Both the position numbers and the translations under genes were made by a program. This document shows positions 1-58,333 of a DNA stretch of 62,659 bases, piece after piece; positions within the stretch are counted from its first letter, which is position 1, and the number at the start of each line of letters is the position of its first letter. The stretch spans positions 1,116,001 to 1,178,659 of the forward strand of contig NW_026782009.1 of NCBI RefSeq assembly GCF_031769215.1, in the 5' to 3' direction. The DNA is from Ylistrum balloti (taxonomy: Eukaryota). Under the pieces are notes generated by a model. That model had not been told where the DNA came from. It worked only from the letters and a program-made list of their open reading frames with translations, and did not search any database.

Positions 1-137
1 ATCCAGATATGTTCGTCACTCTGACGAAGGCCCGGATGGCGTCACCTACTGGCCAGTGTCAAGCTTTCTCCGCTAACGCCGATGGATACGCTCGTGGAGA
101 GGGATGCGGTATCGTCATACTAGAAAGGCTAAATAAT
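1..137 (+). CDS. PKS exon, mid-KS domain (runs off left edge)
   Basis: [45 protein letters not shown] contains the KS motif (F..ADGY.RGEG). Donor AAT|GTATGT at 137/138, phase 0. Confidence 0.93.
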
Positions 138-3100
138 GTATGTTGTCTGTACATGTTTGGACAAATCATTTTTTATCATGTGCTATTGTGAACAAATGAA
201 TTTTGTCAATTGTTCAATTGTTAATTTTCGCTCAAACGAGGATCATTATCACAAACTTTCAGCTGTAGTTAACCATCGAAAATACTATTACAGGCTCTAA
301 AGAATGGCAGACATATTTGGGCGACTATCCGCACGGGCTGTAACCAAGATGGACAGACTGTGAGGCCAATTACTGCACCATCAGGGATCCAACAGAATCG
401 ACTTCTTCATGACATATATCTTCACTCCAACAACATCAACCCGAGCCATGTCCAGTACATAGAGGCCCATGGTATGTATGTTTATATGCGTTAGATACTG
501 CACAGAACTTAAAACTGTTGCAGTGTCGGTCTCCTTCCACAGACTGTTAACTATAAATCTCCCGTGGAGACATCAACTATCATAATAACCTATTAGGATC
601 TTCCAAAAGTGAGTTTGGTCGTACAATAAAACATTTTACGAATAAGAATGCGATCTGCTGATTCGCCCATCTTCAGAATATTTCAAACTCCTTCTTGTTG
701 CATTTAGTCATGTCTCTTTACTTTTAACTGTTCCGTGAGTGATGAAATCTGGAAGTGAATATTCTTTAGAATGACTAGTTCTCCAATTGACGATAACATT
801 CCATTTTCACCTCTTTTGAGACATCTTCTGTTTTGAGCATTGGTAGGAAACAAGGGTAACTAATATTTGAGATTTTAAAAGGATTCATCTTAAACGACAA
901 ATATCCCCTCACTTAAGTTTATCAGCATTTGTTAAAATATCTTGGACAGACTCGAGTTTCAGTATTATTGGGTCAAGGTCAAGGCCACTGTTACTCTTTG
1001 AAATGATTGTTAGCGCTCTATGGCTTCAGTCTTAACTGGATTTTTCAATAAACACCACACGCTTATAAAGCATCAAATACTTGGATAAGCTCAAGTGCCA
1101 AGGCTGATGTGTTGCGGTCATTGTTACAATTGCAAATCACTTATATATATGCGTGGGGTTTGTTTTCACTTTAATATATGAGGAGAGTCAATCGCTAATT
1201 AAAATATCTCACAATGTTTCCACGAGACACACCGACTTAATTGTATTCTTATGGAATCGGAACGGAAAGTGCAAAAAAATAGTAAAAAGAGAAAATCATT
1301 ATTCAATATTATCTTCGTGTTGCAGGACTACATCAGCAATAGTTGGAAATATTTACGATGTCCAAGGTGCTGGAACTGTTCAATTGTCTGCTTCGACCGT
1401 AATAGAAACGGACTTTAAAATTAACACATATCATAACACATCTACATACGCTTTTAGCACATTGATTGAAACGAGTAGATATCTCTCCTATGTAGTAACT
1501 CGGTATTTTTTTTTATAAATGTACTTACATAGTTAAAATTACAAGTAAAACTAATATTATTTGGTTATGAAAAAATATGATTTTCTGAAGTAATAAATTA
1601 GACGACAGAAAATTCGTTCCAAGAGAGAGAAACAATTATGACCACTCTCTTTCATCATTCTTTCACTAATCTATTTACAATGCATTGCATCTAGCAAAAT
1701 CATATGATATTCATATAACACTGAAATCAGGTTTCGTAATCATATGCAATATAAGTTAAATTCTTACATGTCGTTCTTTGTTTTGCCTCTTCTGTTTTAG
1801 CGCCGATCGTTCGATGTTTTGCATTTACATTTTCCGTTTTTCATCGACAATTTTCATTTTAAAAAAATCTTGGTCTGTATTTATATAGGTTAGGGTTTTG
1901 TGATTCAACTTACGAAAAAAGCGTTTTGTTTGATTGCTTTTGGTCTTTTAAAGGAATTGATTTAATAACGAGAAACATGAACGTATCTGAAAAATACTAT
2001 CCGTTTGCAAAAATTGAAAAAAAAACTCATATGATTAATTGATTTGGAAATGCTTTTTATAGTCTGAATGGTTAATAACAGTAAAAATATACTTATATTT
2101 ATGTTTATTCCAAATTAGCGGTATGCTTGACACTTAAGTGATAGAAACATGCAATGAAATTTTACGAAAATGTTCGCGTTTCTTCTGCTTCAGGTACCGG
2201 TACACCAATCGGCGACCCGGTCGAGGTCAACAGTCTTGGGAGCTTCTTTAAAGATTATCCGATACAGCCCAATTATGTGACCAAACAGCGGTTTATCGGA
2301 TCTGTTAAAACAAACATAGGACATCTGGAATCTGGTGCAGGAGCTGCAAGTCTCATTAAGACTCTTTTGATGATGAACCATGCAACAATTGTACCATCTC
2401 TTCATTCGCTTCCACGGAACCCGAAAATAGACTTTGAGAATTACGAACTGCAAATACCTACATCGGTTAACCCATGGCCTGTACTAGAAGATGGTTCAAG
2501 AGCTGCCTGCATAAATTGTTTCGGATTTGGTGGAACGAACAGTCATGCCTTTGTACGACAATGGGTTGGAAGGTCGAACGATACTAATACAACAATGAAC
2601 AAGAACCTCAAATCCACGTGCATTCCACTTTCGGCAAAATCTCAAACGTGTCTGATTAAAGTACTTAGCCATTTGGTTAAACGACTGACAGAAGAACCAT
2701 GCGATCTGAAGCAACTGTCATACACTGCTTCGTGCAAACGAGATCACTTTCGATACCGGAAATTGTTCGTTGCATTCACTATTGCAGATCTTATCGAAAG
2801 TTGCACAGGGGCAATTGAAAGAATGAAAGATGAAAATATTAAACCCGGCAGGAATATCAGGATAGTATACGTGTTTTGTGGCGTCGGGACCACATGGACG
2901 AAAATGGGCATGGAACTTGTTCGACATTTCCCTGTATTTGCTGACACCTTGAAGCGCATTGATAACTATCTGACGTCAATGACTGGATGGTCAGTAGAGG
3001 ACATAATACGTGATGGAGCAAAAATGGATGACCCCTTCATTAGTCATATTGGTATATTTGCATGTCAAGTTGGACTGTCAGACCTCTGGAAACATTGGGG

Positions 3101-6100
3101 AATCTCTCCTGACGCGATTGTAGGTCAATCCGTTGGTGAAGTAGCCGCTGCCTATAGTAGTGGGGTACTATCTCTGAAAGATGCTGTCAAAGTAATTTAC
3201 CACAGGTCCAGGTTGCTGGCAGAGGAATCGGGAGGCAAAATGATAGTGGTAACGAATGTTAATACCACATATGTATCCAAGATATGTAAAAAGGTTGGCC
3301 ATGTTGATATAGCAGTACATATCAGTCCAAATGCATGTACAATAAGTGGTGATGCCAAAGAAGTAAATGAAGTGAAAAACCTCATAGCAATGCATACTAA
3401 AAACACGAGTGAAATTCCTTTGTTTCATGACTTGAATGTCCAGTGTGCTTATCATAGTTTCAAGATGGAAAACGCAGCAAAACGCATTACAGAATGTCTT
3501 AATGGAATTAAAGCTAATCCCCCAGATATTCCAGTATTTTCCACCGTGACAGGAATGATAGCAGAAGATTTCGGTACACCCGAGTATTGGGAAAAAAATG
3601 TCGAAAGGCCAGTATTATTTCACCAGGCAATTAAAGAATCGACGGGTAAAGAGTCAACTATATTCCTGGAACTCGGTCCTCGGCCAGTTTTGAAGGCTCA
3701 TTTGAGTGACATATTCACAAAGGAAGTTGTCACTTCAATTCCATGTATGAAATTTGGTACAGGTTCAATTCAAGTGTTGACTGCGCTTGGTGATTTGTAC
3801 ACATTAGGCGTTAATCCATGCTGGGGAAATATCGTAGAGAAAACAAACCTGACAGACTTGCCTCAATATCAGTTTGACGGTAAGGTCTTAATGGTAGAGT
3901 CCGACTACCGCTTCCTCCGAAAACAGGGATTGATGAATGATTGCTCGGGTAGGTACCTTATGTTGACACAAACAGATACGAAAGGGAAATTTAAGGTTAA
4001 TTTAAGTCCAAGCGAAACACCTTTCGTGTATGACCATGTTATCGATGACGTCGTCGTCATTCCAGGTGCTGTTTACGCTGAGGTGGCATTTGAACTGGGT
4101 ATGAGTGTCATGAATGTAGCAGCTGAATGTTTGCATGTTGAGTACGATATCATCAAAGTGGTCCCCTTGTCGAAAGATAAACCGTTTTATCTGGATATCG
4201 CATCCAACATAGAAGAAACGAATGATTGCTTGATGAAAATTGTTTTTTCAATCACCAAGGATACAATAACGGTTGTCGAAGGATCTGTGACAAACATACT
4301 TCCCACACATTTGCCAACTGTTCAAAATGAGGATATATTCATAAGTACTGGGAACAATTTGGAGCGTGAACAGTTATATAAAGCGTTGGCAATGCATGGA
4401 TACAAATATGGAACTAGAAGTCAGGTCTTGGAAAGAATTATATTCAACAAAAACGAATGCACTGCCTATATAAATCTCACTGAAGGAGTGGCACGACAAA
4501 TTAATCGAACAGCTTTCCATCCTGCTATTCTAGATGCAATGCTTCACTCGAGCGCTCTAATATTCCTTTCTCAACAAAATGAAACATCTAACAAAATCTA
4601 CCCGGTCCGCCTTGGTAGCGTTACCGTGTTTAGATCGTTAGAGAAACGAATGTTGTGTTATACCCGGATCATAAAAGAGGTCAGTGATAGGAGCATAACC
4701 AACATCATTCTTACTACACACAATGGTTTGGTGCTGGCTGAAGTGAAGGAAATCGAACACAATATCATGAATGGTAGCACGGGTGTAAACACATTTGCTT
4801 ATCAGATTGCTTGGACTGAAGAGAATGTGCCAGATGTTATCTGCGATACCCAAGACGACCCAAAACAAAATGTTATCATCTGCTACGACGACAGCGGCAT
4901 TCACACCTTACTTAGGAGTTTTTATCCACGAGGAGAATCCTTTCGACTGAGAGACGTGGCTGACGACCCTGAGTCCATGATATCCGCAATAGACACTGAA
5001 GGTGTGAAGATGACCTTAATTGTTCCAGACTCTTATACTGCCTCACAAAGCGAAAGTAGCGATCATATTTTTGATAATATTTGCAAATGCTGCGAGGCAT
5101 TCCTCAACATTATGAAGAAGCTAAAATACACAGACAAAACTTTGATAATAGTTACAGAGAATACACAAGATGGTGGCTATGAAAAAAATATCAAACAAAA
5201 TGTTTTTGGTTCTGAACTATGGGGGTTTGCTAGATCTTTACGACAAGAAGGTACCAGATGTCGGATTGTATTGATCGATATCCAGCCATCTATTCCCATG
5301 GAAGTGGAGACATTGAACAAAGCCATTCTTTTTTTCATGTCCTCCGATCAAGCTAGTACGCTTACGGAATGTCTAGTTGCTGATGGCAAAATACATAGTA
5401 ACTTCCTACAGCGAGGACTGCATAAAGGTTTAGAAAATGTACACAGAACATTGTACCCTGATACAAATCTACGTCTTCAGGTTCGCAGTACCAAGCCAGA
5501 CAGAGTAGAACGCCCGTTCCTCATACCTGCAGACAACACATGTGTTTCAAAGAAAAATGACATAATTCTTCAAGTTGATGCAATTTGTAGTCACTCGTCA
5601 TCCATATTTTGCGTCACTGAGTTAGATTCAAGTATTGACAATTCACTTTGGACAGATTGGCAAGGTTACCCAGTTATAGGATTAGAATTTCAAGGAACTA
5701 TTATGGGCAAAAAGCAACACGTTGTGGCATGTCACCCTACAAGAGCTACCAATTTGATATCTATACCAGAATGTTGTGTTTGTGAACGATCAAAATTGCC
5801 AATGTATACACCGGGTCTCATCATCAATGCAATGTTAATGTGGCATATCATGCAGCATGTTGAAGACAAATCTGTAGTTTATATCGTCACAGACTCTGAC
5901 CCGTCTGATGATGCACCACTTGCCCTTCTTCGTGATATGATCTTGACGACAAAGCACTGCCAAGTCAAAATAGCATCGATTCACTCTCTCAATGATGCCT
6001 GTGAATGTGAGAATGGCGTGTTTATTTTATTAGAAAAACTTTCCTTATCACAAATAACATGTATTTTACGATTTGGAAATACCATTGTGGGTTATTTCGA

Positions 6101-9100
6101 TGCCATGGGATGCGTGTCAACTCGACAATATCAGATATGCTCAAGAGGGATTAAAGTATGTATCATTAAGCAAAATGACGTGTTTTCTGACATCAACGTC
6201 ATTAGTACTTTTCCAAAAGTAATACGTTGGCTACAACGACAATCAAGAAACCATGATGTAACTTATAATAATCGAAGACCACTAATGACCATCAAATTCC
6301 CTCACGCTAAGGATTCGGAAAAAGATGATATAGAAATAAAGGCAGTTGGAGACATGCTCATCCATAACAATGCAACTTATGTTGTTGTTGGTGGACTGAC
6401 AGGTCTGGGTTGGGAGATTGTTAAATGGCTTGGTTTCAAAGGTGCTGGGATTGTGGTGTCGCTTTCTAGGAGAGATTGTAATCAACAGATGATTGAAAAA
6501 CTTCAAAACGCGATGGATATACATAAGTATCAAATTACCCCTGTGAAGTGTGACATTAAGAATTATGCAGATGTTAAGAATGCGTTTGCTAACATAAAAT
6601 CGCAGTTTCCAAATCATCCAATCAAGGGTATATTCCAGGGAGCAGGAGTTTTGAAAGATACCCGAATTGAAACTATGACAATGGACAATTTCAAGTCAGT
6701 GTTGTGCCCAAAAGTCTTGGGATCATGGAACTTACATCTTGTCTCCAAAGAGTTACCCTTGGATTTCTTCGTAATGCATTCTTCAGTTACTTCGGTATTT
6801 GGAAATGCCGGCCAAACAAGTTACGGGGCTGCCAATTCGTTCATGGATTCATTAGCCTTATACAGAAGGGCCAATAATCTGCCCGGTCAGAGCATCAACT
6901 GGGGAGCATTGGCGGTGGGTATGGCAAGCAACGCAACGATAAGGAATAGCCTTGAAGCTAATGGGTATTTTTTGTTGGAAACGAATCAGATTAAGGAATG
7001 TCTTTTAGATGTTCTGACTCGAAATCCAAGCCAAATAGTGTATGGCTTATTTGACTGGAATATTTTAAGAAAAAATCCCGCCATGATGCGGACCTCTGGA
7101 TTTGATAGCGAGGAGATGTCAAATGCCAGACAGTCATCCATGCAACGGCATGTCAACACAGAGCTCGACATTGCCAATTTCAAGGAAGCGTCTCATGAGG
7201 AACAGAGACAGATTATCGTTGATTTGTTTTTCTCTAGCCTCTCCAGAGTTTTATCAGCATATGACAGAGCAGAAGTAAAGAATCAAAATCTTCTAAGTCT
7301 TGGCATGGAGTCGCAAAAAGCCATAGAATTAATCCAAGCCTTTAAGGACGCTACTGGTTGTAGACTTCCGTTGGCCTATATTCTGTCTCCTGAATATTCT
7401 GTAGAGATGCTTATTGACTTTGCTCATTCTAGTATCACCGCTAACATCGACAGGGAGGTTCATTCCCCAGTGAAATGTGAAAATGTACATGAATCACCGT
7501 CGTGGATGGAAAAATTCTATTTAGACATACACGAAATAAATCAGAAAGATTCAAGTCTTTGGTTCAGCATTGCTTTTAAACTAGGGAGCGGTCTATCCGA
7601 TATCGGAATGTGGCGTACTGTCTTGCGACGGATTACTATCAAACACCGAGAATTGAGAACAGCGTATCAACCTAGCGGGCGAAGATTCGGATTCAGAAAA
7701 GTTACTGCGGATCCAGAGGATGCCAAGGTTGACTTTCGGTGTGTAGATTCTAGCGTTATAACGAGTGAGAAAGACGAAGATATTGCAAAATATTGCACTT
7801 TCGATATAGCAAAAGATCCGCCGTTGCGAGTTCTGTATTGTGACACTGGAAAAAAGCATCGCCTGAGATTCATTATTAGTCACATCACTATGGACCTGGG
7901 AAGCCTTTTCACGCTCGTTGAACAATTGCAGCTGTACATTCCAGCGTTTTTTCTTCATAAACATATCGATTTGACACCTGTAGAGACTCCAGATTTTGCT
8001 GTGCTGATGGAAGAACGAATCGAGTCTGAGAGGGTACATCTTGATAATTTCTGGAGAGGAGAGCTTGAAAAGAGTCGCAGTGTGCCATCTGTAGTTGGGG
8101 ATAAAGTACCCAAACATATGTCAGGAAAGACAAAGAAATTATCTAAGCTTCTACCAAGAGAGCTGGTTGATAATATCAGTCTCGACGTATATCACATAAC
8201 TGTACCTACTCTACTATTTAGTTTGTATCAGATTCTTCTACATGAGATGACATGCGTGTCTGCTGTTCCGGTTGTGCTGACAGTGGACATGCGCCGACAC
8301 TTTCCGGAGTTCATTGGAAAGATATTTCTTGGTACCAACTACATTCCAGTCATAACACAGCTCCCCAGGGTATGTGCAACATTACGAGAATGCATTTCAT
8401 TGTGCTCCAACCAGATGTTGCTCGCGAGTGCGAACAGCTTGTACCCATTCCAACTTATCAAACAAATTGATATTGATAAAGAGAACTATTTCCGACATTT
8501 TTTCAATGTAAGAGACATATCAAAACAACTCGAAAAACGTGAAATGTATTCAAATTACCATATGACAAATATAGGCTATATCACCGGTTTCCTAAACAAA
8601 GTGGAGACAGCTTTAAATGTGGTGACTGGTCGCCAGGACAGATCTATGGAATTAGTGTTGAGTTATGACTCAGAAATTGTCAGTTCCTCCAAAGCTGAAA
8701 GTATGCTTAACGACCTTGTGCTACTGGCCAGTGCTGCTGTAGCAAATCCAGATCTCGGACTGAAAGACATACCTTTGGAGTGTTATCAAACCGAGGCTTC
8801 CGACAAAATGGACCCTCACTTGCCTATGGGTAAATATTGTGTTACAATTTGTCGTCGTGAAATTTTATATATCTTGATTATTGCCTAGTGTCAAATTGGA
8901 CACTGCGTCTGTTTTCGTCAATTCAATGTTCCCTTAGCAAATGACAGATAACTCACTTATTAATTCTGATTATAAATGGACATCGTTGTAAACAATTTCA
9001 CTAAAATAGACAAGAAATGGAATGCTATGAAATGTATGCTTGTATAGTATATATTTGGTTACTAGTAAATGAGACCAACGAAATACCAGAGAGAAATCTG

Positions 9101-11666
9101 CCATTTCTTTTTGGAAAAAAAATCGCCAATATTTTGTCACATTTTGTTCGATTTTCAAATCTGAGGTATCAAAGTAATCGCATACGGTAATAAATAAATT
9201 GCCTACAAGGAAAACTAAAAATACAAACTAAACTAACACACCTTTCATTCATTGTATATGTGAATTACGACCGGCGAATTCCCCGATGTAGCTATGCATG
9301 TCCGCTAAAATTCAGGTCAAACAAGGCTATTATAAAGTCAAAACGTCATACCATCTATTTGATTAATTTTAAAGGGGACAATTTTCGATTTCATATTCAC
9401 ATAAACAAGCTCCGGATCGTATGCAAGGTATTTAGTTAATATCAGAAAATAGACTTCTTCTCGATTTCATTCAAATCAAATCCGTCTCCATTACCGAAAT
9501 AGGAACAGGGCAAAAGATTTTTCAACAGATGTATTGGATTGGTTGATTTTATTCATTGGTTCATCAAAAATGTCCTTAAAAATGTAAAATTATCCCGTTC
9601 CTATTTTCATTCAATATTAATTTGAAGTTAAAAGAGTCACAGGGAGCTGATAGTTTGTCAGTAGCATACTGCAATCAATTGCTATATAAAGTAATGATAA
9701 ATATTTATAAAAATCGATCTTTCGGATTTCGATAGGAGTCAAAGGTCAAAAGTGATATGTTGTTTACAAGCATTTTGAAAAACTTCTAATGTTCTACCGA
9801 TGAGATTTATCTCATTCTTGCCTGAAAACCCCGGTATAGTCCGGACCAAGTATTAATATTTTTGAGTTGGTCGGAAATTAAATATGAACTCCCATATCGC
9901 CTTCTTGAAAAAACACATTTGAATCTATTTTTCCAGTTTGACCAGTGTCATTGAGCTGAAAATTAGTTTGGAAAGGATTCCAAGAAATGTTGCCTTATAA
10001 AGTATTCGAATGCTAGCTAAAAAATGTATCCATGTCAGTTTCTAGATTGGTTTATTTCTAAATAACTTCCGATGGTTTTTTCCGATTAGGACCTATGCTT
10101 CATTTGGTATTGCGTAATTTGGAAATATAAGAAAATGATGCTTCATCGGGATATCCGTTTTTATTTTCATACTTGCTACAAGCCATATATTGCAATAAGT
10201 GCGACATAAATTGGAGATTTTAAAAATTAGATTGTTAATATCTAAACATTCCCATGTAAAAAAAGTGTGAAATCTTAAAATTCACGATTATATGACAGAT
10301 GTATTATGCAAATTACTTTTATCAGGTGCAATTATAGGATCGCACAAAGTTATACAATGTGCGATGTGTGCGTGGTGTATGCACGGTGGGAAACTGAACA
10401 AAATTAGCTATTGCACATTTGTGCGCGCGATGTGCGATTCCATAGGGGTACATACCAATTAAAAATAATAATGAATAAGTGTTGGATAGGATTACTTTGA
10501 TCTCTAGATATATATGAGTACATTTAAGTAAGTTTATTAAGCCATATATTTACAAGTATATACACAAGTGCTTCTTCAGAAGAAGACTGAAGAGTATTTA
10601 AGAGCGTTTTATATACAAAGTAAGTAATGTTTGAAAAGCATGTCACAAAGTTTTTGACGGATTTTTGAAACGATCAACCTTCGAAGTAATGGAATGTACC
10701 ATAACACTACCAAAAGTCCTTGTTTAATTAAAGTTAAATCAAAAGAAACTTACGCTACGACATTTTTGACAGAACAATGCACTGACACTTGAAATTCCCT
10801 CGCTGGACATTATCGATACCACTAACAGGAAAGTCTAATACCAACGAAATCGGACACATGTAGACTCACAGCTCATAGCTTTCTGAAAGCGCAATACATC
10901 ACAAAACTAACGCAGCTGTAAGGACAGGCGATAAAATATTTTGTAACTGTGAAATTGGATATTCAATACGATTTCTGTACCATCAAAATATACAAATGAT
11001 AGCAGTGTTAAGATACAGTTGACCTTGTTGTATAGGCTATGACTTAAGTGGCAACCATTCGTTATGTTAGAACAATTGTATAAACGGCCAGATTAATTCA
11101 TTTGTTCTACAATCTAAAATATTTGGGCTTTTTTAAATAATGTTTTATCAAAGTTTGATTGATTCTTTTATATCATCAAATGTTGGATGATACTAGTCGC
11201 AGCTGCATTACTATTGATTCGTTTATTCCTAGATTTTATGTGCTGTTGTTTTATGCATAAGTTAGAAAATAAAGCATCATCTAACATATGACCGCAAATG
11301 TAAAATATGAAATTGCGTTCTCTTTCTGTTTGCAGCAATATTTATGAAAGAGACTTCAAACGGTTGGGAATATCCAGTGCAGCTGGAATTGGACGTGCAA
11401 AATGATATTACCAGGATAAGATTGATCAATCCTAATGGCCGAGGAACGTCAAGACATAAAGCAATACCAAGTCATTGTATCATTGCTGTAGACATCGGAA
11501 AAATCTCTGGTATGTATAATATGCATTCAATTCAAATACGACAATTTAAAGTTGTTTGGTTATCTCGTTACTCTCGTAAATAGTTCATATCAAAATTCAC
11601 CTTTTTCATCATAGTGGAATAAATTACATCTTTTTTCTAGCTTCTTATTTTGTGCCAACTTACTGA
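1..11666 (+). CDS. Spliced iterative type I PKS with C-terminal NRPS condensation domain (KS-AT-DH-psiKR-psiER-KR-ACP-C-unknown); 5' end outside window
   Basis: Exons 1-137, 294-471, 2194-8829 and 11336-11509 join through GT-AG introns with matching phases (0,1,1). The KS motif EAHG|TGT is rebuilt across intron 472-2193. About 2,380 codons are visible. The 3' end (stop at 11664-11666) is provisional. Confidence 0.9.
294..471 (+). CDS. PKS exon, KS domain (not in ORF track)
   Basis: Acceptor TTACAG|GCT at 293/294. Reads [59 protein letters not shown]+G, with KS motifs NQDG, ITAPS and YIEAHG. Donor CATG|GTATGT at 471/472, phase 1. Confidence 0.93.
2194..8829 (+). CDS. PKS giant exon: KS C-terminus, AT, DH, psiKR, degenerate ER, KR, ACP, condensation domain
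   Basis: Acceptor TTCTGCTTCAG|GT at 2193/2194. Motifs: [11 protein letters not shown] (His 2322) and FGFGGTN; AT GQSVG (Ser 3129) and CAYHS; [13 protein letters not shown] (His 4035) and HPAILD (Asp 4533); KR GGLTGLG (6390), VLKD and SYGAAN (Tyr 6822); ACP LGMESQ (Ser 7311); C domain [26 protein letters not shown] (7878-7901), YPFQ, YDSEIV and ANPD. Probable donor ATGG|GTAAAT at 8829/8830, phase 1. Confidence 0.95.
9275..10157. mobile_element. Possible non-autonomous DNA element in PKS intron
   Basis: Imperfect inverted repeat (14/18): CGAATTCCCCGATGTAGC at 9275-9292 vs reverse complement of 10140-10157. No ORF; no TSD seen. Confidence 0.3.
11336..11509 (+). CDS. Probable next PKS exon; C-terminal extension of unknown domain
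   Basis: Strong acceptor TTCTCTTTCTGTTTGCAG| and donor CTCTG|GTATGT. Phase 1 in and out, matching the 8829 donor. Open frame (A)[57 protein letters not shown]. Confidence 0.72.
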
Positions 11667-11780
11667 ATTATGGTTTAACGAGATTTGAATGACAGGTCGG
11701 AATCGGTATCTCTGATGTCTTCTGTTAAGAGGACACCAGAGAACCTAAGAATATGGTATGCTGTATTCCACTACATAATA
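11641..11780 (+). CDS. Candidate last or next PKS exon (ambiguous)
   Basis: Acceptor TTTTTTCTAG| at 11640 gives (A)SYFVPTY-stop at 11664-11666. A weak acceptor at 11682 gives (D)LNDRSESVSLMSSVKRTPENLRIWYAVFHYII in the same frame, ending at donor ATA|GTAAGT (11780). Confidence 0.35.
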
Positions 11781-12620
11781 GTAAGTCACTTTGCAAGTAG
11801 CTATGCAGAATCGTGGTTTCCTTCCGCGAATTCTGCCAAAGGAACAGAAATAAATCTGGTGTCGTCCAAAATGCTTCTTTTTACCCGTTCTTTATTTTCC
11901 CCTTTTGATTTGTTTTCATATGATCCTTGCAATCGTGAGAACGTTAAACCCCATAAAACCACAAACAAGGTTGGGGTTAAATATAAAAATGACATACACG
12001 TTCTGACCAAATAATGAGACAAACAAATTATCATTTTCATAATCCCCCCAGTCATGGAAATGTGGAACCTGGTTTAGTTCGCTCAAATAGTTCATTCTAA
12101 ACTACGGAAAGTATCTTATTTATATTCTTCCCTAGTAGGCCGCCCTTTGCTTCAAAAGGTTTCTATGCAACAGCTTTTATTAAAAACTCTGCTCCTTTCA
12201 CTCAAGAATACTTCAGACCAAATTGCATCTTAACTACAAATGAAAGACAATAAAGAAGTTTAGGCCATGGGGCAGAGACCAATTATCTATACATACATAG
12301 CTTTCATTTACACAAGCTTATTTTTGGGCCACATCTGAATTAAATATCTTCATTCCAACAGAGTCATATTAAAGGACATGGGAAGCTATTTTATACCTCG
12401 TATACTAGTTTTATACTTCAACCAATAAGATGCAACAGTAGCTGTGATTCACAAGACGCCGACCCTTACTTCGCTATTCGATAAACGAGTGTTCTGAGTA
12501 TGCATATTCTATTGAATAAAAAATGAGCCGATTAACTTCTTAAGTCAAAGATGACATCCTGTCGATCATCCAGTACAAAATATGCCACACACGTGCATAT
12601 GGGGTATAATTTGTGTTCGA

Positions 12621-12936
12621 AATCATGTCCTTTGCCTCTAAAGTGATTCATCTATTCCCGATATTGGGCCCCACATCTTTCACCCCAGAGGCCGAGATCA
12701 TGTCCTTTGCCTCTAAAGTGATTCATCTATTCTCGATACTGGGCCCCACATCTTTCGCCCCAGAGGCCGAGATCATGTCCTTTGCCTCTAAAGTGATTCA
12801 TCTATTCCCGATATTGGGCCCCACATCTTTCGCCCCAGAGGCCGAGATCGTGTCCTTTGCCTCTAAAGTGATTCATCTATTCCCGATATTGGGCCCCACA
12901 TCTTTTGCCCCAGAAGCCGAGATCGTGTACTTTGAC
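12621..12936 (+). repeat. 75-bp tandem repeat, ~4.2 copies
   Basis: Units start at 12621, 12696, 12771, 12846 and 12921 (GATCATGTCCTTTGCCTCTAAAGTGATTCATCTATTCCCGATATTGGGCCCCACATCTTT...), near-identical. Confidence 0.95.
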
Positions 12937-13909
12937 ATTCCTACCATTTTTTTTAAAAATAATCTTTTCAGATTCCTGGAGTCTTATCATACAAACATCG
13001 AAGAGACATCACAATTTCAAAACCAACGACTATTTTATGGTCCAAGTCTGGAGAGCAAAAATCCGGAAATTGATATCTCCCCGTCCACTGCCGTCATCTT
13101 GATGAGTTAGTGATGCAGAGGCCTGTATGAAGAGTTTGTTTACATGTTTCTTTAAATGGTAGATGTTTCGTAACCTAAAAATTAGCTGAAGCCCTGTATT
13201 GCGGTATCAGAGCTTCAAGAGCTACAAACGATACATTTGTATATTGTATTGATGCTTTGATGTTGTGCAATACATTACTTACATTTGATTGAATTATGGC
13301 ACGTGGACATAAAAGAGGGAATATTTACTTGACGTCTTGTCCAAAGTAAAGATAAGGGTACTGGCAAAGGCGAAGCCAGACTGGTATGGAAGGGTATATG
13401 TTTTATTTACCTTTACTTTTCAAAAGGTTCGAGGTCATGTTCCCAAGGAAAAAAATATTATCGCCTATGGTTTTGTGTACTCTGAAAAATGAATTAAAAT
13501 AAGTTTGATTTGTTTAAAATGGTTCTTTATTAAATCATTTTCCTGAATGTACGTGATTCAGATAAGACACTTTCTTGTGAACATTTTTATTAATCATTTA
13601 CTAGGTAAAATTGTATAGCATCTTTTGTTTATTATTAAAGCTGCAATTTTGATATTATTATAGCAAGCCAACCGGTTATAAGTATTTTCTCTATGTATAT
13701 ATATATCATATTTGTACTTAAAATGTCGTCATGGCTGTCTCTGGTATTCATTAAGATTTCAAAAAGCCACAAAATATAGATAGCATGGATTGGAATTTAA
13801 ATATCGTACGCTTCGGTAAATAAACCTTTCATAATTTCCCCGTGTGGTAAGCCTATTTTAGTTAAGATTACTTAGATAAGTTGTTGTATAGTCATGCAGA
13901 GGAAAGGCG

Positions 13910-23704: not shown

Positions 23705-26614
23705 TAAGATTTGACCTCAAACTAATTGCAAAAGAATTGCTGTTTTTTGTATTGTACAGAACACGAATTACTTGATAACATATCAAAAGTCTAGAAAAAT
23801 CTAAACAAGGGAACATTTCATAAATCAGACAAATCTGACGAAATACCGCTATCGAGTTGTACGTCGTGTTCGGGCCTCCTTAGGTGCAATGGGAGATAAT
23901 ACGGACACTGTTTCAGCGTACGGGATCCAGAACATATCCTGACAGATAACGATATTATTGTAGAGAAACGTGTCGGTAAGAGGTTATATATTTCTCATTA
24001 CAATATTTTATTCTTATTTGACATTATTTACTTGAGTTTTTATTGAGCATTTATTGTTTCTAGAAGTATTTCAACGACACAAATTTGGCAGAATATTGAA
24101 ATTCAAATTCAGCGTACACCTACCTTGCACAGATGCAGCAACTTGAGTTCGACCGCCCCAATGTCTACCAGCAGTTTTTGTCCGGATATCACGTTTTTCG
24201 AAGAAGCGATCGCTACTTGGCAGGCCTGTCTTGTGACCGCGTTATAGAACAGGAGCTTATGAGAAGTGTTAAGACATCTGGAGGTTTAACAAGAGGCCGT
24301 GGAATGGGCGAAGTTTAGCGGGCACAATGGTTGCTGTCGATACCAGCATGTGCAATAACGCCATGCAAATGTTGACTGGGGTCGGTTATCAAACAAGCGA
24401 TCAACATAAGGAATCTTCTATCTCGAGAAAGGAGAGGGACTACAAGGACATTGCCACTATTCTGTCTTTTCTGGAGGAGAGAAATCCATTTTCCGGCTGC
24501 GCATCTCTAAGAAACATAGAAACGTGAACCATGACAGATGACACAGTTACTCAGGACAAAGCAAAGGAAATAGAAAAGCGCACCATGGAAGGCAAACAGA
24601 TTCTTGACTTCTCATTTAAAAAGTCCCAGCAGGTGGTGACGTTAAGAGATAGATCGTGTGTTAATGCAGATGGAGAAAAAATTCAGAGTGATCCGCAGCT
24701 CTTATTTCAGCGCTTAACCATCGCTGCCAGCACACTTTGTGAAGATCCGTCTGCGGTATTCAAATATGAATTGAGCAGCTATCCATCATCACTTTTTGAA
24801 GTAACAGGGCTTCCTAGAGCAGCACAGAACTCATCTTTGGCCGACTGCATTTGGAATCTAGGACAATGTCGCATTGAAGCACTTCGATATGACCACGGAA
24901 CTATCATTGTTCTTGACGGGGGTTCGCTGTTACACCGAGTTCCATGGACTGTAGGCGCTACATTCTTAACGATTTGCCAGTCTTATGTAGAGTTTGTGAC
25001 AAGGAGATACTTGAATGCGATTGTAGTCTTTGATGGTTATGGGAATGACTTGTCCGCCAAATATGTCACTCACGTGAGACGAGGACTTACATCACAGATA
25101 GCAGACTTCACGGGAGAAATGCCTTGTCGGATGAAAAAGAAAAAAAATCTAGGAAATTCAGGAAATAAACAGCATTTAATAAATTTACTCAGCTGCAAAC
25201 TCCAAGAAAATGGCTGCACAACGGTACACTCTGCAGCGATGCAGATCTTCTTATAGTCCAGACGGCTGTGAACTGCGCAGACATTAACGACGTCGTCGTA
25301 GTCGGAGAAGACACTGACCTTCTTGTTCTCCTATGCTACCATGCTATTCCTTAGCAACACAATATATTATTCAAGTCGGACTGTAGCCGATCTCTTGGAA
25401 AGCAAATACAGATATGGGACATAAACCTAACAAAAACAGTTCTATGAGATGTGTGCACTCTGCTCCCAGTGTTACATGCGCTGACAGGATGTGATACAAC
25501 ATCTCGGCTATTCGGTTTACAGCCAAGATGAGGACGGGAATCACGTCTGTCAAGGTAACTTATTTCTCAACACTATTTTTTCTAATGTATGCGACGTATA
25601 ACGAAAGGCGGTTATAATAATTACTCAATGTTTACTGTAAAGATATTTTGTAACATATTGAGTCAGACTGTTTCTCTCATACACTGTATCTTCTTTTTCT
25701 TTTTGTGGACAATGAACTAATTAATTACTGGAGTAAATTTTCAAGATATGTGCAGTGTATATGACAGAGCAATTACTGAAAACTGTCAGGTGCAGTTGCA
25801 AAATGAATTGCGATACGAAAAGGTGTACATGCCGCAAAAATGGACTCGATTGTACCGCAGGACGCAGTGAGTGAAGGGGTACCAGCTGTTCCAATTTGTC
25901 AGCAATTACTCATTCTGACTTAACTGAGGACTTGTAGGAAATACTGATCAAGCATTGCAGATATTTTGTTAATTCAGCCACCAAGATAAACTTTCATATT
26001 GAAGTGTGCTGTTAGTTGTATATAAGCAATGTGTATGTGTTAAGAAATCAAGCATAAAAGGTACAATGTATTGTGTAATAATCAAACACTACTTATTTTG
26101 TTGAACATGTCATTTTTGCATTTAATCGATAACAATGAAGTTGTAGCCATTCTGGATAGTTTAACTTTTTAATGTTATAAAGGAAATGTAATACAAATTT
26201 AAACTTATCATAAACATGCAGAAATAGAAAAAATATGTTTTGCAAATGAATAATGAGCATTTTTGCTATATACATGAACAAAACTGATGTGCAAGCATTT
26301 ATGCTTAATTAATAAAATAATGTTCTCCACCCAGATATATTTTATTAACAAAATTAAAACAAGATATGACTACAGTAATCAACAAGTATTGTCGCTTGAT
26401 TGTTGATCATTTTGATATCCATGCATTTTTAACTATCACACATTATTACTAGAATCCTTGAAATTTCCCCTTGCGGTCCACTTGTAAATATTAAAAAAAA
26501 GATATCTTCCCCTTCGTATATAAGCCTAGACTTTTAATATAATGTTTATGGAAAATTTCTTACTTCATTGCAGTTGAAATAAATTCTTTTGGAATTAGTT
26601 TGAGGTTAAGCCTA
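23705..26614 (+). mobile_element. Academ-like (AcademX) DNA transposon copy A, internally deleted and decayed
   Basis: TIR: GACCTCAAACTAATTGCAAAAGAATT (~23713) vs AATTCTTTTGGAATTAGTTTGAGGTTAAGCCTA (ends 26614). Remnants 24100-25905: IEQELMRSVKTSGGLTRGRGM, XPG/PIN-like VLDGGSLLH, VVFDGY and EDTDLLVLL, and Cys-rich CSCKMNCDTKRCTCRKNGLDC. Transposase+XPG+Cys8 is the established AcademX layout. Confidence 0.7.
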
Positions 26615-27083: not shown

Positions 27084-30000
27084 TACGGTTTAACCTCCAA
27101 CTAATAGCAATAGAAACAATTCTTGTTAAAATGTAATCAGAATATGTTTAAATAAATCATAATAAAACTTTAGAAAAATCTAAATAGGGGAGCATTCTAT
27201 ATTTTGAGATTAAAAATTGCAAAAGTATGTTAGTGTTGATTTTACGCGTATGGGCCGCCGTACATATAAAGGGAGGTACATCCTGCGCAGAATATGTTTG
27301 TTTACCTACGACGATGCCAACTTTAATACGTCTCGAACCTGTTGTAATTATGATAAGCGACTTCTGTGAATTTTCTGCGACATATTTGATTTTTATCTTT
27401 GGAAACGTGTGCCATTTGCTTGTGATACTGACTCTTCCACATGTACGAAGCCTGCATTTTATAGAAATTGCTATGAAAAAATGTTGTACATGGCACAGTC
27501 TGAAATAGATATCCAATGCAATGAATGGTTTTATTTGATTGCGATGAGAAAACGAGCAACATTTATGTGTTCACATGTAAATGAAAACGACCTGTATCTT
27601 AGGTCGAAAAAATCTATGGAAACCTATAAGCGCTCTTTAAGCCCGCTTTATATTTTTTTTTATATATAATATTGTTATGTAAATGGTAATTTACATGTGT
27701 TTTCGAAACTGTAGTTTTTCGTGTATATACAACTTATTGTTCCATATTTAACCACATTTAAAATCATAATGTAAAGCTTGATTTCGAACTAGAACATTGG
27801 GTAACTTGGAGAGACCGAGGAACGTTTTGAAATCTTGAAACTATTTGACTATATATTAAGTTGATTTGGCAGACGTTTCACATATATACAATTGTTAAAT
27901 TTTGAAGCGTTAATTATTATTGTCACATAATACACTGTTTAATAAAAGCAATGTTCGGTGCTAAATAAAACAGATATTTTTCGCAAATTATCACCGAAGT
28001 ACATGTAGCAATATTTTAAAATTTAGACTAATGCTTCATAAATCACTGGATGACAATGATTTTTTATGATCAATCCTATTTCATTTTTATATTTGTTTAT
28101 TTTGATTTTTTTGTTTGTGTTTTGTTTTATTTAATATTATTTTCTTTTTTCAATTTAATTTTACAACGTGAAAATCTACACAAATATACTTAAATAGGAC
28201 CGGATGTCATTGACCACCAAAAACGGGGAGCAGTTCTAATCAAAAGGTTAAGTAATCTCATATTTTGCTTGTCTTATTTGTATATTTTGTTTCTTTTTGT
28301 TTCCAATTACTACTTGATTTATTTATCTTTTTAGCTTATCAAATGCACTTTTATTACTGAGCATATACAAAAAAGTATCTATGTACATCTACATTTGTAC
28401 ATCATAATTTTTTATTTTTTTTTTTTTTTTTACATTTTTATTGTAGGAACGCGTCTGTGCAATTTGCAAAGCGCCTGTTATAGACGGTGAAGATGTGGTC
28501 ACTCTTACAGAAAAAGGAAGCAGTGGTGTGAACAATGCCAACAAGGAACATGGTGATGTCGACACGGTCAATACATACACTGGTGATAAAGTTCATAGAG
28601 AGTGTAGGCGTCAGTATTGCTATAAAAACGTTATACAACGACCAGGCAAATTCCAGATAGTTATTCAAAACAACGTTCTCTTCGTTCGAATGATGACGAT
28701 CAACTTTAATTTTGTAAATGTGTATTTTCGGTGGGAAGCAGACAAAAAAAAAGAGGAAAAATGATGTAAATCCTGTACGGACTATGGGGTTTCAGACAAG
28801 CTTACCCCAAGCCATCAAGGATCGAGAGGAGGACAATTGGGCATTAGAAGTTAGAGCCCATCTAGAGTTTGTACGTGATATTCCTGCTCCCGATGCCGTT
28901 TACCATCAGCAATGAAATGTAAATTTCCGTACCAACAAGCAAGTTCCAAAGCAGTTTACAAAGGAAGAAAACAAAAGACGCAAATCATTTGGAAGACCTG
29001 TGAATTATCTTAATGAGGCTGGGTTTCAACAAATTATTAACATTTTAAATGAACATGCCGATGACCAGATCATTGTTCCAGGACTCATTGATCACATGAA
29101 GAGTTTTTGCAGAGAGGATGTTTATAGTGCCACCCATATGAAGAACAGACATTTAAAGCACTTTGGCGCAAACATTATCATCACTGAACTAAACGGGAAA
29201 CCAAACGTCATCACATTTAAAGCTACTGCATCTTCTATACTAAGTGATTTCCAGCAGAGACCAAAATATCAAGACACGGAAGCCGAAAAAAAGTATTATT
29301 GAAACAGCAGCCAAGAGACATCCAAAACTATGGATAGTACAAAGGATGTCTACCCAGCAGCTTACAATATACCTTCTTGCGAGGAAAATATTGAATATAT
29401 TCCCAAGAGTTTGCAGATAATGTTGCGCTACATTTTCAACGAAGCGGATGCGAACGTGAAGCTAGCATCAATAGGACAGGCGATAGTTCTGGCAACATGC
29501 CCAAGGGCCTTCATCACTCCACTTAGTTAGGTCTCGGTATACAGATGCATCACTAATTTGGATCCAATTTCCTGATAGATACTTTGCGTCAGCTGGGATT
29601 TTTCGTATCAGTGCAGCTGCATCGCAAGGAACTGATATCGACGGCATACCCAGGACCACACCATTCAATACGTAGTTTATAACGTTGATCATAACCTGAG
29701 GACAATAGATGGCCACAATACCTTCCATCGAATCGGAATAATTTCCTGTGTCACACCAGCCATGGCACGCCAACGACAAATTCTAAGAATAAGCATAGAT
29801 TTCTGTAAACTTTATGTAAACCAAAGACATCATTCACATTAGACGTACATGGGGAGCTGTTGGCGCCAAGGTAACCTTAACCGAAAACATGCCATTCAGG
29901 ACATAAAAAGAGCTTTTCCTTGCGACGCTGACACAATGATAGTTCAAACAACTGTTTGATACCGTTACGGTATCGATGGGCGAAGATACAGACCTAAAAG

Positions 30001-31939: not shown

Positions 31940-32812
31940 TAACTTTCGTATAGTTTTTTGCTGTGCACATAAGAATACCAGGCAATGAAAAAGCAGATCG
32001 TGCCGCATAGAAAGATTTATCGCTACCACCTGTTTTATTAGAACTTCATTTCAATTATTTTAAACCATTTATTAAACGATTTTAAAATCTCCGTGACAGG
32101 AAGAATGGGATCAATATATCGGTATTAATTACACTTCGTAAAACCTTTAATCGGAGAATGGTCTCCATCCTATAGAGACAATCTTCGAATGGGCCATACA
32201 CACCTTAAGCATTCATATATGTTGAAAGTAAAACATAATCTTGGTGCATAGGATGAGATGAACCATTCCCTGTAAACATTTTGTATTGAACTGCATTAAC
32301 CTTTTGTTTATTCGAGAATTTTTTTATCATAAGGTTTCAACTCTAAAGACCCTTTTTTGAAACAGTTTATATTTGTAAAATTATAGGTATTTGAAAGATG
32401 TTAGTCTTTATTATAGAATATTAATAATCATTTTAATCATTAATGATATAACCATTACAGATTTTTAGCATTGGTCTTTTTTTCTTTCAGTTTGTATGAT
32501 GTTATTTCCTTTTTGTATCGCTGTACTTTTCACCGGTTGATGGTCCTTGTGATCTTTATTAAGATTATAATAATAATAATATAATATCGCAACTTACAAG
32601 TCTGAAGACCCTTTTTGAAGCTGTTCAGATTGATAAAATTTTAGATTATCTGAAAGATGTTGGTCTTTATCATAGGATGTGTCTTACTATTTTAATCTTT
32701 TGTGATAATATAACCAGTTAAGATTTTAAGTGTTTATCTTTCAGTTCGTTTGATGTTATTTTCTTTTTGATAGCTGTGTCTTTCTCCGGTTGATGGCCCT
32801 AATGATCTTTTA
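31940..32812 (+). mobile_element. Two consecutive 3' fragments of the I/Nimb-type LINE
   Basis: RNase H end (HIRIPGNEKADRAA) plus 3' UTR ending in a (TAA)n tail at ~32567-32585, followed by a second 3' UTR copy at 32588-32812. Confidence 0.75.
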
Positions 32813-56832: not shown

Positions 56833-58333
56833 TGATGACGGACAAGGTGGTTGTCTCTATAGCCTGGAGACCATTCAATGATAACAGGTTTAAGGGGGTG
56901 CAATTTGTTTTTGGTATAGGTATTCCAATCCTCCTACCACTGAGCTTTTAAGATTTGTTAAATAAATGGTTTAAAATCGGTAAAATGAAGTTTCAAAACA
57001 ACAGATGGTAGCGATAAAGTTTCCTTTGCGACACGATCTGCTTTGTCTTTACCTGGTATTCCCATGCGCCTAGGAAACCAGCAAAAAGCAATACGAAAGT
57101 TAAAAGCAAGTTCATGATATAGGATTAATGCATTACGAATGAAAATATTTTCGATATTTTTTATTGTAAGAGTTTGTAGAGCAGAAAGAGTGTCTGAATG
57201 GATAACAGCTCTCATTATTTTGTTTCTTTGAATATATGCAAGGGCGAGGTATATAGCTCGCGCTTCTGCCGAGAATATTGAGGCGTTGTTCGGTAGCCGG
57301 CATCCATAGGTTTCATCTTGTGTCCATGGCCGCAGCAACCTTATAATTATCTTTTGAACCATCACCATATTAATGTAGAAATTGTTTTATATTTTGATTG
57401 CAATTTCGAGAAGGATGAACGAAAGGTGTAACTATCTGTGTATGATTTAAGCATTTCGTGAAGTGAAAAGCCAACTTCAGGTGAATTCATGAGCCAAGGG
57501 TAGAATTTCTATCGTTCCAAATGACTGAATTTGGTTAACATCAATATTTGTTTTTTTTAAAAGAGCAGGAAATCGAATACCAAATGATGGAATAGTTTTT
57601 GGTTTGCCCTGAAACAAGGTTTTATATTTTGGATCAAATACATTGGAAAAAACATGATTTGAAGGATTTGACCTTAGCTGAATGGTGCATTGCACAGCCA
57701 ATTTATTTAGACGGCTAAATAGTGATGGTTCGTTAACTTCTACATAGAGACTTGCTGTAGGTGTGGTCTTAAAAGCTCCGAGAGCGAGCCTGGGACCTTG
57801 GTGATGAACAGTGTCTAATAATTTTAAATATGAAGGTAAGGTCTAGCAGATCCATATACGATGGGACCGTAGTTCAATTTTGATCTCATAATGGCGCTAT
57901 AGTGTCTTAGTAAAACTTTCCTCTCAGTTCCCCAATCAGTGTGGGACACAACCTTTAGAATATTCAGTGCCTTAAGGCATGTGGCTTTAAGGTATTTTAT
58001 GTGTTGAAGAAACGACAATTTTCTGTCTAATATTACGGCTCAACAACCGCAATTGGTGCACCACACTCAGACAGATTTGGATCGTTCTGTTGTTTCCTAA
58101 TTTGACAAAAATGCATACAACTGTTTTTGATTGTGAAAATTTAAAACCATTTCCATCTGCCCAAATTTGTAGTCGATTAAAACATTGTCAAGTTGTCTTT
58201 CGATGGTATTGATATGCTTAGATCGATAGCACATGATGAATTCAACGACATAAAGAGCGCCCTCCATTGTAGGGGATAATGTTTTGACAATACTGTTCAT
58301 TTTAAGTCCAAAAAGTGTAATCGAAAGAATGCT

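Follow-up and report, generated by a model that had tools for sequence, protein, structure and literature searches.

How does an animal-encoded polyketide synthase (PKS) that carries no thioesterase (TE) release its finished chain? The question is raised by the gene at the start of a 62,659-nucleotide stretch of the scallop Ylistrum balloti (assembly GCF_031769215.1, contig NW_026782009.1, positions 1,116,001 to 1,178,659 of the forward strand; hereafter the window, whose coordinates are used throughout). A first-pass annotation made from the letters alone had described an animal PKS that ends in the condensation (C) domain of a nonribosomal peptide synthetase (NRPS). Four-fifths of an intact scallop PKS gene, its 3′ part, lie in the window; the C domain is followed by a tail with a predicted pleckstrin homology (PH) fold, and release of the chain by the C domain is, in our judgement, moderately probable.

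Animal-encoded PKSs are a young field, in which almost no mollusc enzyme has a known product. A mollusc PKS clade with forms that do and do not carry NRPS condensation domains was described recently (Lin et al., 2024, Nat Commun 15:236, PMC10764717), and because the PKS-plus-C architecture was published in 2024 it cannot be called unrecognised and nothing is overturned here. The gene is a member of this published, biochemically uncharacterised mollusc group, now with a corrected 3′ end. Literature searches of incomplete coverage found no biochemically characterised mollusc example, in agreement with the first-pass annotation. What the locus supplies is a clean, corrected gene model, in which the TE-less, C-bearing form of PKS is intact and under selection in scallops.

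Gene Structure and Host Origin

Rebuilt from the sequence and from homologues, the type I PKS gene runs over positions 1-13102 of the forward strand in five exons (Table 1), with 2417 codons visible, a single terminal stop and no frameshift, in a window without any N. All introns are GT-AG, all phases agree and every splice site of the spliced model is intact, as had been claimed from the letters. Two introns inside the ketosynthase (KS) precede the giant exon c, and two more at the 3′ end flank the exons of the tail. Exon a encodes the end of the KS N-terminal domain (positions 3-137; PF00109, E 8e-12, profile positions 208-250 of 252), with 95.6% amino acid identity to the collinear locus described below. 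Exon c is stop-free and encodes the C-terminal part of the KS, the acyltransferase (AT), the dehydratase (DH), a middle region of 531 residues, the ketoreductase (KR), the acyl carrier protein (ACP) and the C domain. A single open reading frame (ORF) at 2154-8888 (+), of 2244 aa, carries everything from the C-terminal half of the KS through the C domain, and the Pfam domains within it (Ketoacyl-synt_C, KS-AT linker, Acyl_transf_1, PS-DH, KR, a weak PP-binding match and Condensation PF00668, in that order) bear out the single frame KS-AT-DH-KR-ACP-C that had been proposed.

It is at the 3′ end that the model changes. The exon proposed earlier at 11336-11509 (exon d) and the splice from 8829 to 11336 are correct: tails of homologues from Pecten, Ylistrum, Mizuhopecten, Mytilus and others align with this exon, which has a counterpart at 29397-29657 of the collinear locus. 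The earlier gene end at 11666 had to be moved, as the homologues run on into an exon at 12972-13102 (exon e), stop included; homologue tails align here as well, and the counterpart lies at 32074-32289. The mini-exon 11641-11666 that had served as last exon is phase-consistent but has no counterpart in any homologue, and was replaced by exon e. Nor is the C domain the protein terminus, since these two further exons encode the PH-fold domain.

The collinear locus (L001; scallop assembly GCA_031769215.1, contig JAUZWB010001144.1) follows the window through introns and downstream flank, with nucleotide identities of 92.8% in exon c (L001 20669-27319), 84-91% in the introns and 68-75% over ~12 kb past the gene. 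The nearest named proteins are from Pecten, Mizuhopecten, Argopecten and Ylistrum, and the surroundings are AT-rich (GC 33-41%) with many reverse-transcriptase fragments. Bacterial contamination or recent horizontal transfer is rejected in view of the introns, the collinearity with a scallop locus and surroundings rich in repeats and in AT. The locus is a canonical PKS gene of an animal, neither an animal fatty acid synthase-like PKS (AFPK) nor a contaminant, and its introns and the collinear scallop locus uphold the earlier view of a host-encoded spliceosomal gene.

Two features of the 3′ region are of note for gene prediction. The annotated protein of L001 (P0001, 2601 aa) skips the PH exons and joins the C domain to exons up to ~15 kb downstream; since the PH exons of L001 are themselves intact, its annotated C-terminus is rejected as an annotation error, and the 3′ end of P0001 is probably a gene-model error. 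The last PKS intron of the window contains a tandem repeat (12618-12934; 75 bp x 4.2 copies, 95% match, Tandem Repeats Finder score 571) that is noncoding for the PKS and that creates a spurious 165-aa ORF (12613-13110) running into the real last exon.

The Condensation Domain

The region at 7490-8780 that had been assigned to a C domain does match PF00668, with 60.4 bits (E 1.8e-16, profile positions 17-444 of 456) in the protein and 64.5 bits (E 9.8e-18) when the sub-region 7200-8828 is searched, against a gathering cutoff of 30.6 bits in both cases. A search of the C region against NCBIfam gave nothing useful. All seven core motifs could be located, as the first-pass annotation had implied in calling them recognisable. 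C3 reads SHITMD, so that two residues of HHxxxDG are retained, the Asp and the catalytic second His. None of 33 family members departs from the Asp, and retention of the second His extends over the lineages of the scallops, Mytilus, Pinctada, Saccostrea and Patella.

A profile of the family run against the Protein Data Bank (PDB) matches NRPS C domains (FscG PCP-C, E 4e-12; also LgrA, AB3403 and TycC). An AlphaFold2 model of the Pecten homologue P0008 matches C domains in Foldseek (E ~1e-20) and in VIA-align (Z 20-24 over 350-390 residues) at a high overall root-mean-square deviation of 16-18 Å, and the comparison is best taken as a predicted, shared two-lobed C fold of the chloramphenicol-acetyltransferase-like kind and not as a precise model.

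The C-Terminal Tail

Exons d and e together encode a conserved domain of ~100 residues with a predicted PH fold. In 12 scallop homologues a conserved stretch of ~105 residues follows the C domain, its first half corresponding to exon d and its second half to exon e. A hidden Markov model (HMM) of the tail scores 90 bits on the spliced window model and matches all scallop lineages as well as Mytilus, Sinanodonta, Mercenaria and Saccostrea; the tail is conserved in five bivalve families. The same HMM has no match in the Pinctada, Patella and Liolophura models, which may merely lack the terminal exons, as P0001 does. The isoelectric point of the tail is ~10 in most members.

AlphaFold2 run on the family alignment predicts seven strands and a long C-terminal helix (E11-15, 21-29, 36-40, 50-53, 57-65, 68-75 and 79-84; H87-108), with a pLDDT of 83-92 for the C domain plus tail and of 88.5 for the tail alone. 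In Foldseek the top 50 PDB matches of the tail model are all PH or PH-like domains, including those of GRK2, ASK1, ARAP2/3, Dok2, PLC-delta1, DAPP1, BTK, AKT1, Tfb1 and Sbf1, and the AlphaFold DB Swiss-Prot set concurs. TM-scores to PH structures are 0.46-0.63 when normalised to the query and up to 0.77 when normalised to the target, and the search of the family profile against the PDB also lists the PH domain of Sbf1 (E 0.5). The tail shares with the PH domains of GRK2, Dok1/2, ARAP2/3, PLC-delta1 and Sbf1/MTMR5 the seven-stranded sandwich, the helix cap and the conserved Trp (TM 0.52-0.77); unlike them it has no evident phosphoinositide motif, and its identity to them is 7-19%. As modelled, the tail has a PH fold, whereas its membership of the PH family by sequence is weak and below the Pfam threshold.

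The literature searched (coverage incomplete) yielded no account of a PKS-PH fusion, and the word “pleckstrin” is absent from the text and supplements of Lin et al. (2024) that were examined; a PH-fold tail after a PKS C domain seems to be previously undescribed. Its presence across bivalves directs attention to where in the cell the enzyme resides and to what serves as its acceptor.

Selection Along the Gene

Comparison of the window with L001 gives ratios of nonsynonymous to synonymous divergence (dN/dS) of 0.11 for the KS, 0.19 for the AT, 0.43 for the DH, 0.40 for the 531-residue middle, 0.36 for the KR, 0.29 for the C domain and 0.38 for the PH domain (overall 0.33). Because the ratios of the terminal C and PH domains are 0.29 and 0.38, both appear constrained, and on this measure both are under purifying selection. 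Synonymous divergence (dS) itself climbs about seven-fold along exon c (AT, 0.03; C domain, 0.21), a gradient that is suggestive of gene conversion or recombination within the 5′ half of the gene and is consistent with the exchange of C-terminal parts reported among mollusc PKSs (Lin et al., 2024).

The Ketosynthase-to-Carrier Region

The domain order is KS-AT-DH-(psi-KR/ER remnant)-KR-ACP-C-PH-like, in which the part labelled as a remnant of a pseudo-ketoreductase (psi-KR) and an enoylreductase (ER) is probable. The N-terminal half of the KS and its catalytic Cys lie upstream of the window; in the collinear relative P0001 the site reads DTACSSS. The KS-AT of P0001 scores 460-620 bits to PKSs in the PDB (CurL, Dictyostelium PKS, DEBS and MAS) compared with 317 to fatty acid synthase (FAS), and, judged from these scores of a relative, the KS-AT is PKS-like and not FAS-like.

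For the 531 residues that separate DH from KR, neither Pfam nor the PDB sequences gave a match. Their nearest feature clusters in the ESM Atlas are ADH_N/ADH_zinc_N and SpnB_Rossmann (score 0.91), and the place of the GGVG NADPH site reads SDPSDD (5877-5912). The region is probably a structural psi-KR with a degenerate ER-like remnant; an ER or a methyltransferase (MT) was considered here and set aside in view of the missing Pfam and PDB sequence matches, the ESM-Atlas resemblance to ER and psi-KR serving as a lead only. Pfam searches of the window protein and of three relatives of full length detected no methyltransferase family. By its motifs the enzyme would be a PKS with a live KR and DH and with no working ER, because the glycine-rich NADPH site of the latter is replaced. 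The attachment serine of the ACP is invariant across 19 family members.

TABLE 1. Positions of exons, domains and motifs of the PKS gene in the window.
Feature	Position (strand)	Content or family	Boundaries or motifs
Exon a	1..137 (+)	cut by window start; codons in frame from base 3	donor GT at 138
Exon b	294..471 (+)	KS core up to EAH/G; translation matches P0001	acceptor AG 292-293; donor GT 472-473; phase 1
Exon c (giant exon)	2194..8829 (+)	6636 nt	acceptor AG 2192-2193; donor GT 8830-8831; phase 1
Exon d	11336..11509 (+)	PH-like N-terminal half, strands 1-4	acceptor AG 11334-11335; donor GT 11510-11511; phase 1 in and out
Exon e	12972..13102 (+)	PH-like C-terminal half (last strands and Trp-bearing helix)	acceptor AG 12970-12971; TGA 13100-13102
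KS motifs	(+)		HGTGT across the 471/2194 splice junction; NIGHLE 2313-2330
AT	2865..3788 (+)	PF00698, E 6e-51	GQSVGE 3123-3140; catalytic-His motif CAYHS 3444-3458
DH	3978..4757 (+)	PF21089 and PF14765	HxxxDxxxxP 4029-4064; DxxxH 4527-4547
DH-KR middle region	4761..6353 (+)	531 aa, no family assignment	
KR	6372..6911 (+)	PF08659, E 1e-54	GGLTGLG 6390-6410; LKD 6645-6659; catalytic Tyr 6819-6839
ACP core	7263..7379 (+)		attachment serine in LGMES, 7299-7313
C domain (NRPS type)	7530..8771 (+)	PF00668	
C motifs	(+)		C2 7644-7667; C3 SHITMDLGS 7878-7904; C4 7989-8009; C5 8328-8351; C6 8436-8453; C7 8490-8510

Release of the Polyketide Chain

No thioesterase family is present among the Pfam matches of the window protein, as the first-pass annotation had held, and release would thus fall to the C domain. 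The reading we favour, at moderate probability, is an iterative PKS lacking an ER, in which the C domain frees the chain by passing the acyl group to a nucleophile. The single PKS module would work iteratively and, with a live KR and DH and no working ER, would leave an unsaturated or hydroxylated acyl chain on the ACP. This ACP-bound chain would be the donor for the C domain, and its transfer to an amine or hydroxyl nucleophile would yield an amide or an ester; an acyl-amide or ester product, as first proposed, is reasonable to expect. The mostly basic PH-like tail, which occupies the place of an NRPS adenylation (A) domain, may anchor the synthase at a membrane or on an acceptor-supplying partner.

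Several observations weigh against this account. C3 of the window copy has neither the first His nor the Gly of the consensus (SHxxxDL vs. HHxxxDG), and a sister lineage (Sinanodonta, Mercenaria and a chiton) is without the second His and keeps the first only, so that, judged from the aligned motifs, catalysis via the second C3 His is not universal within the family. The nearest solved C domains are of the elongation type, with carrier-bound acceptors rather than free ones, and the structural comparison was made on predictions for the Pecten homologue P0008, whose C domain shares 57% identity with that of the window, rather than for the window protein. In the window copy the ACP scores 19.3 bits to PF00550, just below the cutoff of 20.8. 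For the tail, matches to the Pfam PH clan are below threshold (at best 21.9 bits to PF00169 in a Ylistrum tail, cutoff 25.1), with most tails unmatched, and alignment by eye reveals no evident phosphoinositide-binding K-Xn-(K/R)-X-R pattern in the loop between strands 1 and 2. The terminal CON domain of LovB and MokA shows, moreover, that a C domain at the end of a PKS need not be a releasing enzyme.

The last of these points leads to the idea that the C domain releases nothing and persists as a structural or accessory remnant, a role proposed for the CON domain of LovB and MokA, and that the chain leaves by another route, such as spontaneous cyclisation or a trans-acting hydrolase or reductase. 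The degenerate C3 (SHxxxDL) and the part of the family that is without the second His would fit this idea, the order KS-AT-DH-ER0-KR-ACP-C parallels that of LovB, MokA CON (6ad3) is among the structural matches (Z 21.1 to the P0008 model), and AFPKs likewise off-load without a TE (Lin et al., 2024). However, the seven core motifs are recognisable, the His and Asp are kept in the lineage of the window, dN/dS of the C domain (0.29) is as low as or below that of the reductive domains, and the C-PH unit is retained across bivalve orders; we regard a remnant as unlikely. A split PKS/NRPS, in which the C domain is a true NRPS-style catalyst and the acceptor amino acid is carried by a separate A-T protein encoded elsewhere, would make a polyketide-amino acid hybrid. 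In its favor are the nearest solved relatives, which are LCL elongation C domains with carrier-bound acceptors (FscG PCP-C, LgrA and Txo), the label Condensation_LCL that antiSMASH gives to related mollusc domains in a survey including Argopecten, Mimachlamys, Pecten and Mizuhopecten (Lin et al., 2024, supplements), and the presence of NRPS-type enzymes in molluscs (PMC11869996). Yet the PH-like domain stands where an A domain would follow, the 49 kb downstream of the gene contain only reverse-transcriptase fragments and unassignable ORFs, with no A/T-domain partner or tailoring gene, and no A or T domain gene is called around L001. Animal pathway genes are often unclustered, so the absence of an A/T gene nearby is weak evidence, and we hold the split system to be decidedly unlikely.

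That the gene is a decaying or unexpressed paralogue is highly improbable. It belongs to a tandemly expanded family (three copies on one Ylistrum contig, two on one Pecten chromosome) and dN/dS values of 0.33-0.43 in several domains are relaxed, but all 2417 codons are free of stops and frameshifts, the splice sites and catalytic motifs are intact and dN/dS is well below 1 in every domain.

A more specific form of release by the C domain can also be imagined, in which the conserved C-PH unit is a new release device: through its PH-like domain the synthase would be tethered to a membrane or a specific protein, and the C domain would acylate a non-carrier macromolecular or lipid acceptor with an ER-less, polyene-type chain. 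This is a long shot. A possible example would be the anchoring of the unsubstituted polyene pigments reported from bivalve shells to a lipid or matrix component; if true, it would give mollusc polyene color a genetic basis and add a PH-guided condensation domain to the off-loading modes of PKSs.

Relation to Known Systems

The closest published system is the mollusc PKS-C clade of Lin et al. (2024), with which the window gene shares the mollusc host, the PKS-like KS and the order KS-AT-DH-KR-ACP followed by C, without a TE. It also shares the gene structure, since the introns of mollusc PKS genes are few in number and cluster toward the N-terminus (Lin et al., 2024), and those of the window are likewise few and 5′-placed beside one very large exon. 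In contrast to the window gene, that account describes the C domain alone, without product or function, and the window copy is a scallop-lineage paralogue; the two 3′ introns that flank the PH exons are not mentioned in those parts of its text covered here. AFPKs (such as EcPKS1/2) and animal FAS are, like the window protein, animal-encoded iterative megasynthases, and AFPKs too are without a TE, the off-loading mechanism being unknown for most of them; unlike the intron-poor window gene with its PKS-like KS, AFPK and FAS genes are intron-rich throughout and have no C domain (Lin et al., 2024).

The fungal highly reducing PKSs LovB and MokA (PDB 7cpx and 6ad3; KS-MAT-DH-MT-ER0-KR-ACP-CON) resemble the window protein, as interpreted here, in having a single iterative module, an inactive ER and a C-family domain directly after the ACP, and LovB matches the KS-AT of P0001 with 404 bits. 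The window protein differs in having no methyltransferase and in its added PH-like tail, and the C domain of its family is no closer to LovB/MokA CON than to bacterial NRPS C domains. Among the latter, LCL C domains (FscG PCP-C, 7kvw; LgrA, 6mfw; Txo1/2, 6p4u) give the best profile and structure matches and share the two-lobed fold and motifs C1-C7. Unlike these, the window-family domain has the first His and the Gly of HHxxxDG replaced, at 14-18% identity, and the window gene has no downstream A-T module, the donor presumably being a PKS ACP.

Transfer of acyl chains to free nucleophiles is carried out by terminal or free-standing members of the C family such as mycobacterial PapA5, fungal C_T domains and the fumonisin enzyme Fum14. 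The logic proposed here is the same: the acyl donor is bound to a carrier, the amine or alcohol acceptor is not. Neither in sequence nor in structure was a specific affinity to these subtypes seen, and the top matches are ordinary elongation C domains.

Family Distribution and Expression

Word-based and exhaustive searches recover more than 30 mollusc proteins in which a PKS carries a C domain, from Pecten, Mizuhopecten, Argopecten, Ylistrum, Mytilus (four species), Pinctada, Saccostrea, Sinanodonta, Mercenaria, the limpet Patella and the chiton Liolophura; the architecture is far beyond chance. In a tree of C domains, 33 PKS-attached members form one clade with 100/100 support relative to six sampled NRPS C domains, which suggests, with an outgroup of six only, a single origin, and the window groups with P0001 inside a scallop-only clade of nine. 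Paralogues share contigs (P0004/P0007/P0012 on an 890-kb Ylistrum contig, P0002/P0008 on a Pecten maximus chromosome and P0005/P0006 on an Argopecten chromosome), an arrangement indicative of tandem expansion within scallops. In the unionid Sinanodonta two near-identical PKS-C-PH genes, P0072 and P0186, lie on one scaffold.

At C3 the lineage of the window reads xHxxxD, and the members of the sister lineage, which reads HxxxxD, are P0072, P0077, P0144, P0056, P0075, P0090, P0097, P0106 and P0138; both His residues are missing from P0040, P0073 and P0147. The xHxxxD and HxxxxD lineages may carry out different chemistry.

A Mytilus homologue, C-PH included, forms a single unbroken ORF of 8070 nt on a transcript-like Logan contig of 8.2 kb that was assembled from a sequencing run, and this looks like expression of the family, not of the window gene. 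In the pearl mussel Sinohyriopsis cumingii two adjacent PKS models, Hcu_1142.t12/t13, are reported to be up-regulated in purple and golden mantle, and the authors tie them to an earlier genome-wide association study (PMC12652611). A link of the PKS-C-PH family to shell color through these models is a lead only.

Mobile Elements in the Window

Within the most GC-rich stretch of the window (0.41) lies a 241-aa ORF at 24531-25256 (+) that has no Pfam match and was not seen in any block shared collinearly with L001; this ORF may belong to a mobile element. Further downstream, broken reverse-transcriptase ORFs occupy both strands between 54201 and 62024 (RVT_1 at 58698-59304 (+) and 60615-60992 (-); RVT_3-like at 56961-57368 (-)). 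These ORFs are the debris of non-LTR (long terminal repeat) retrotransposons, and related repeats recur many times in L001.

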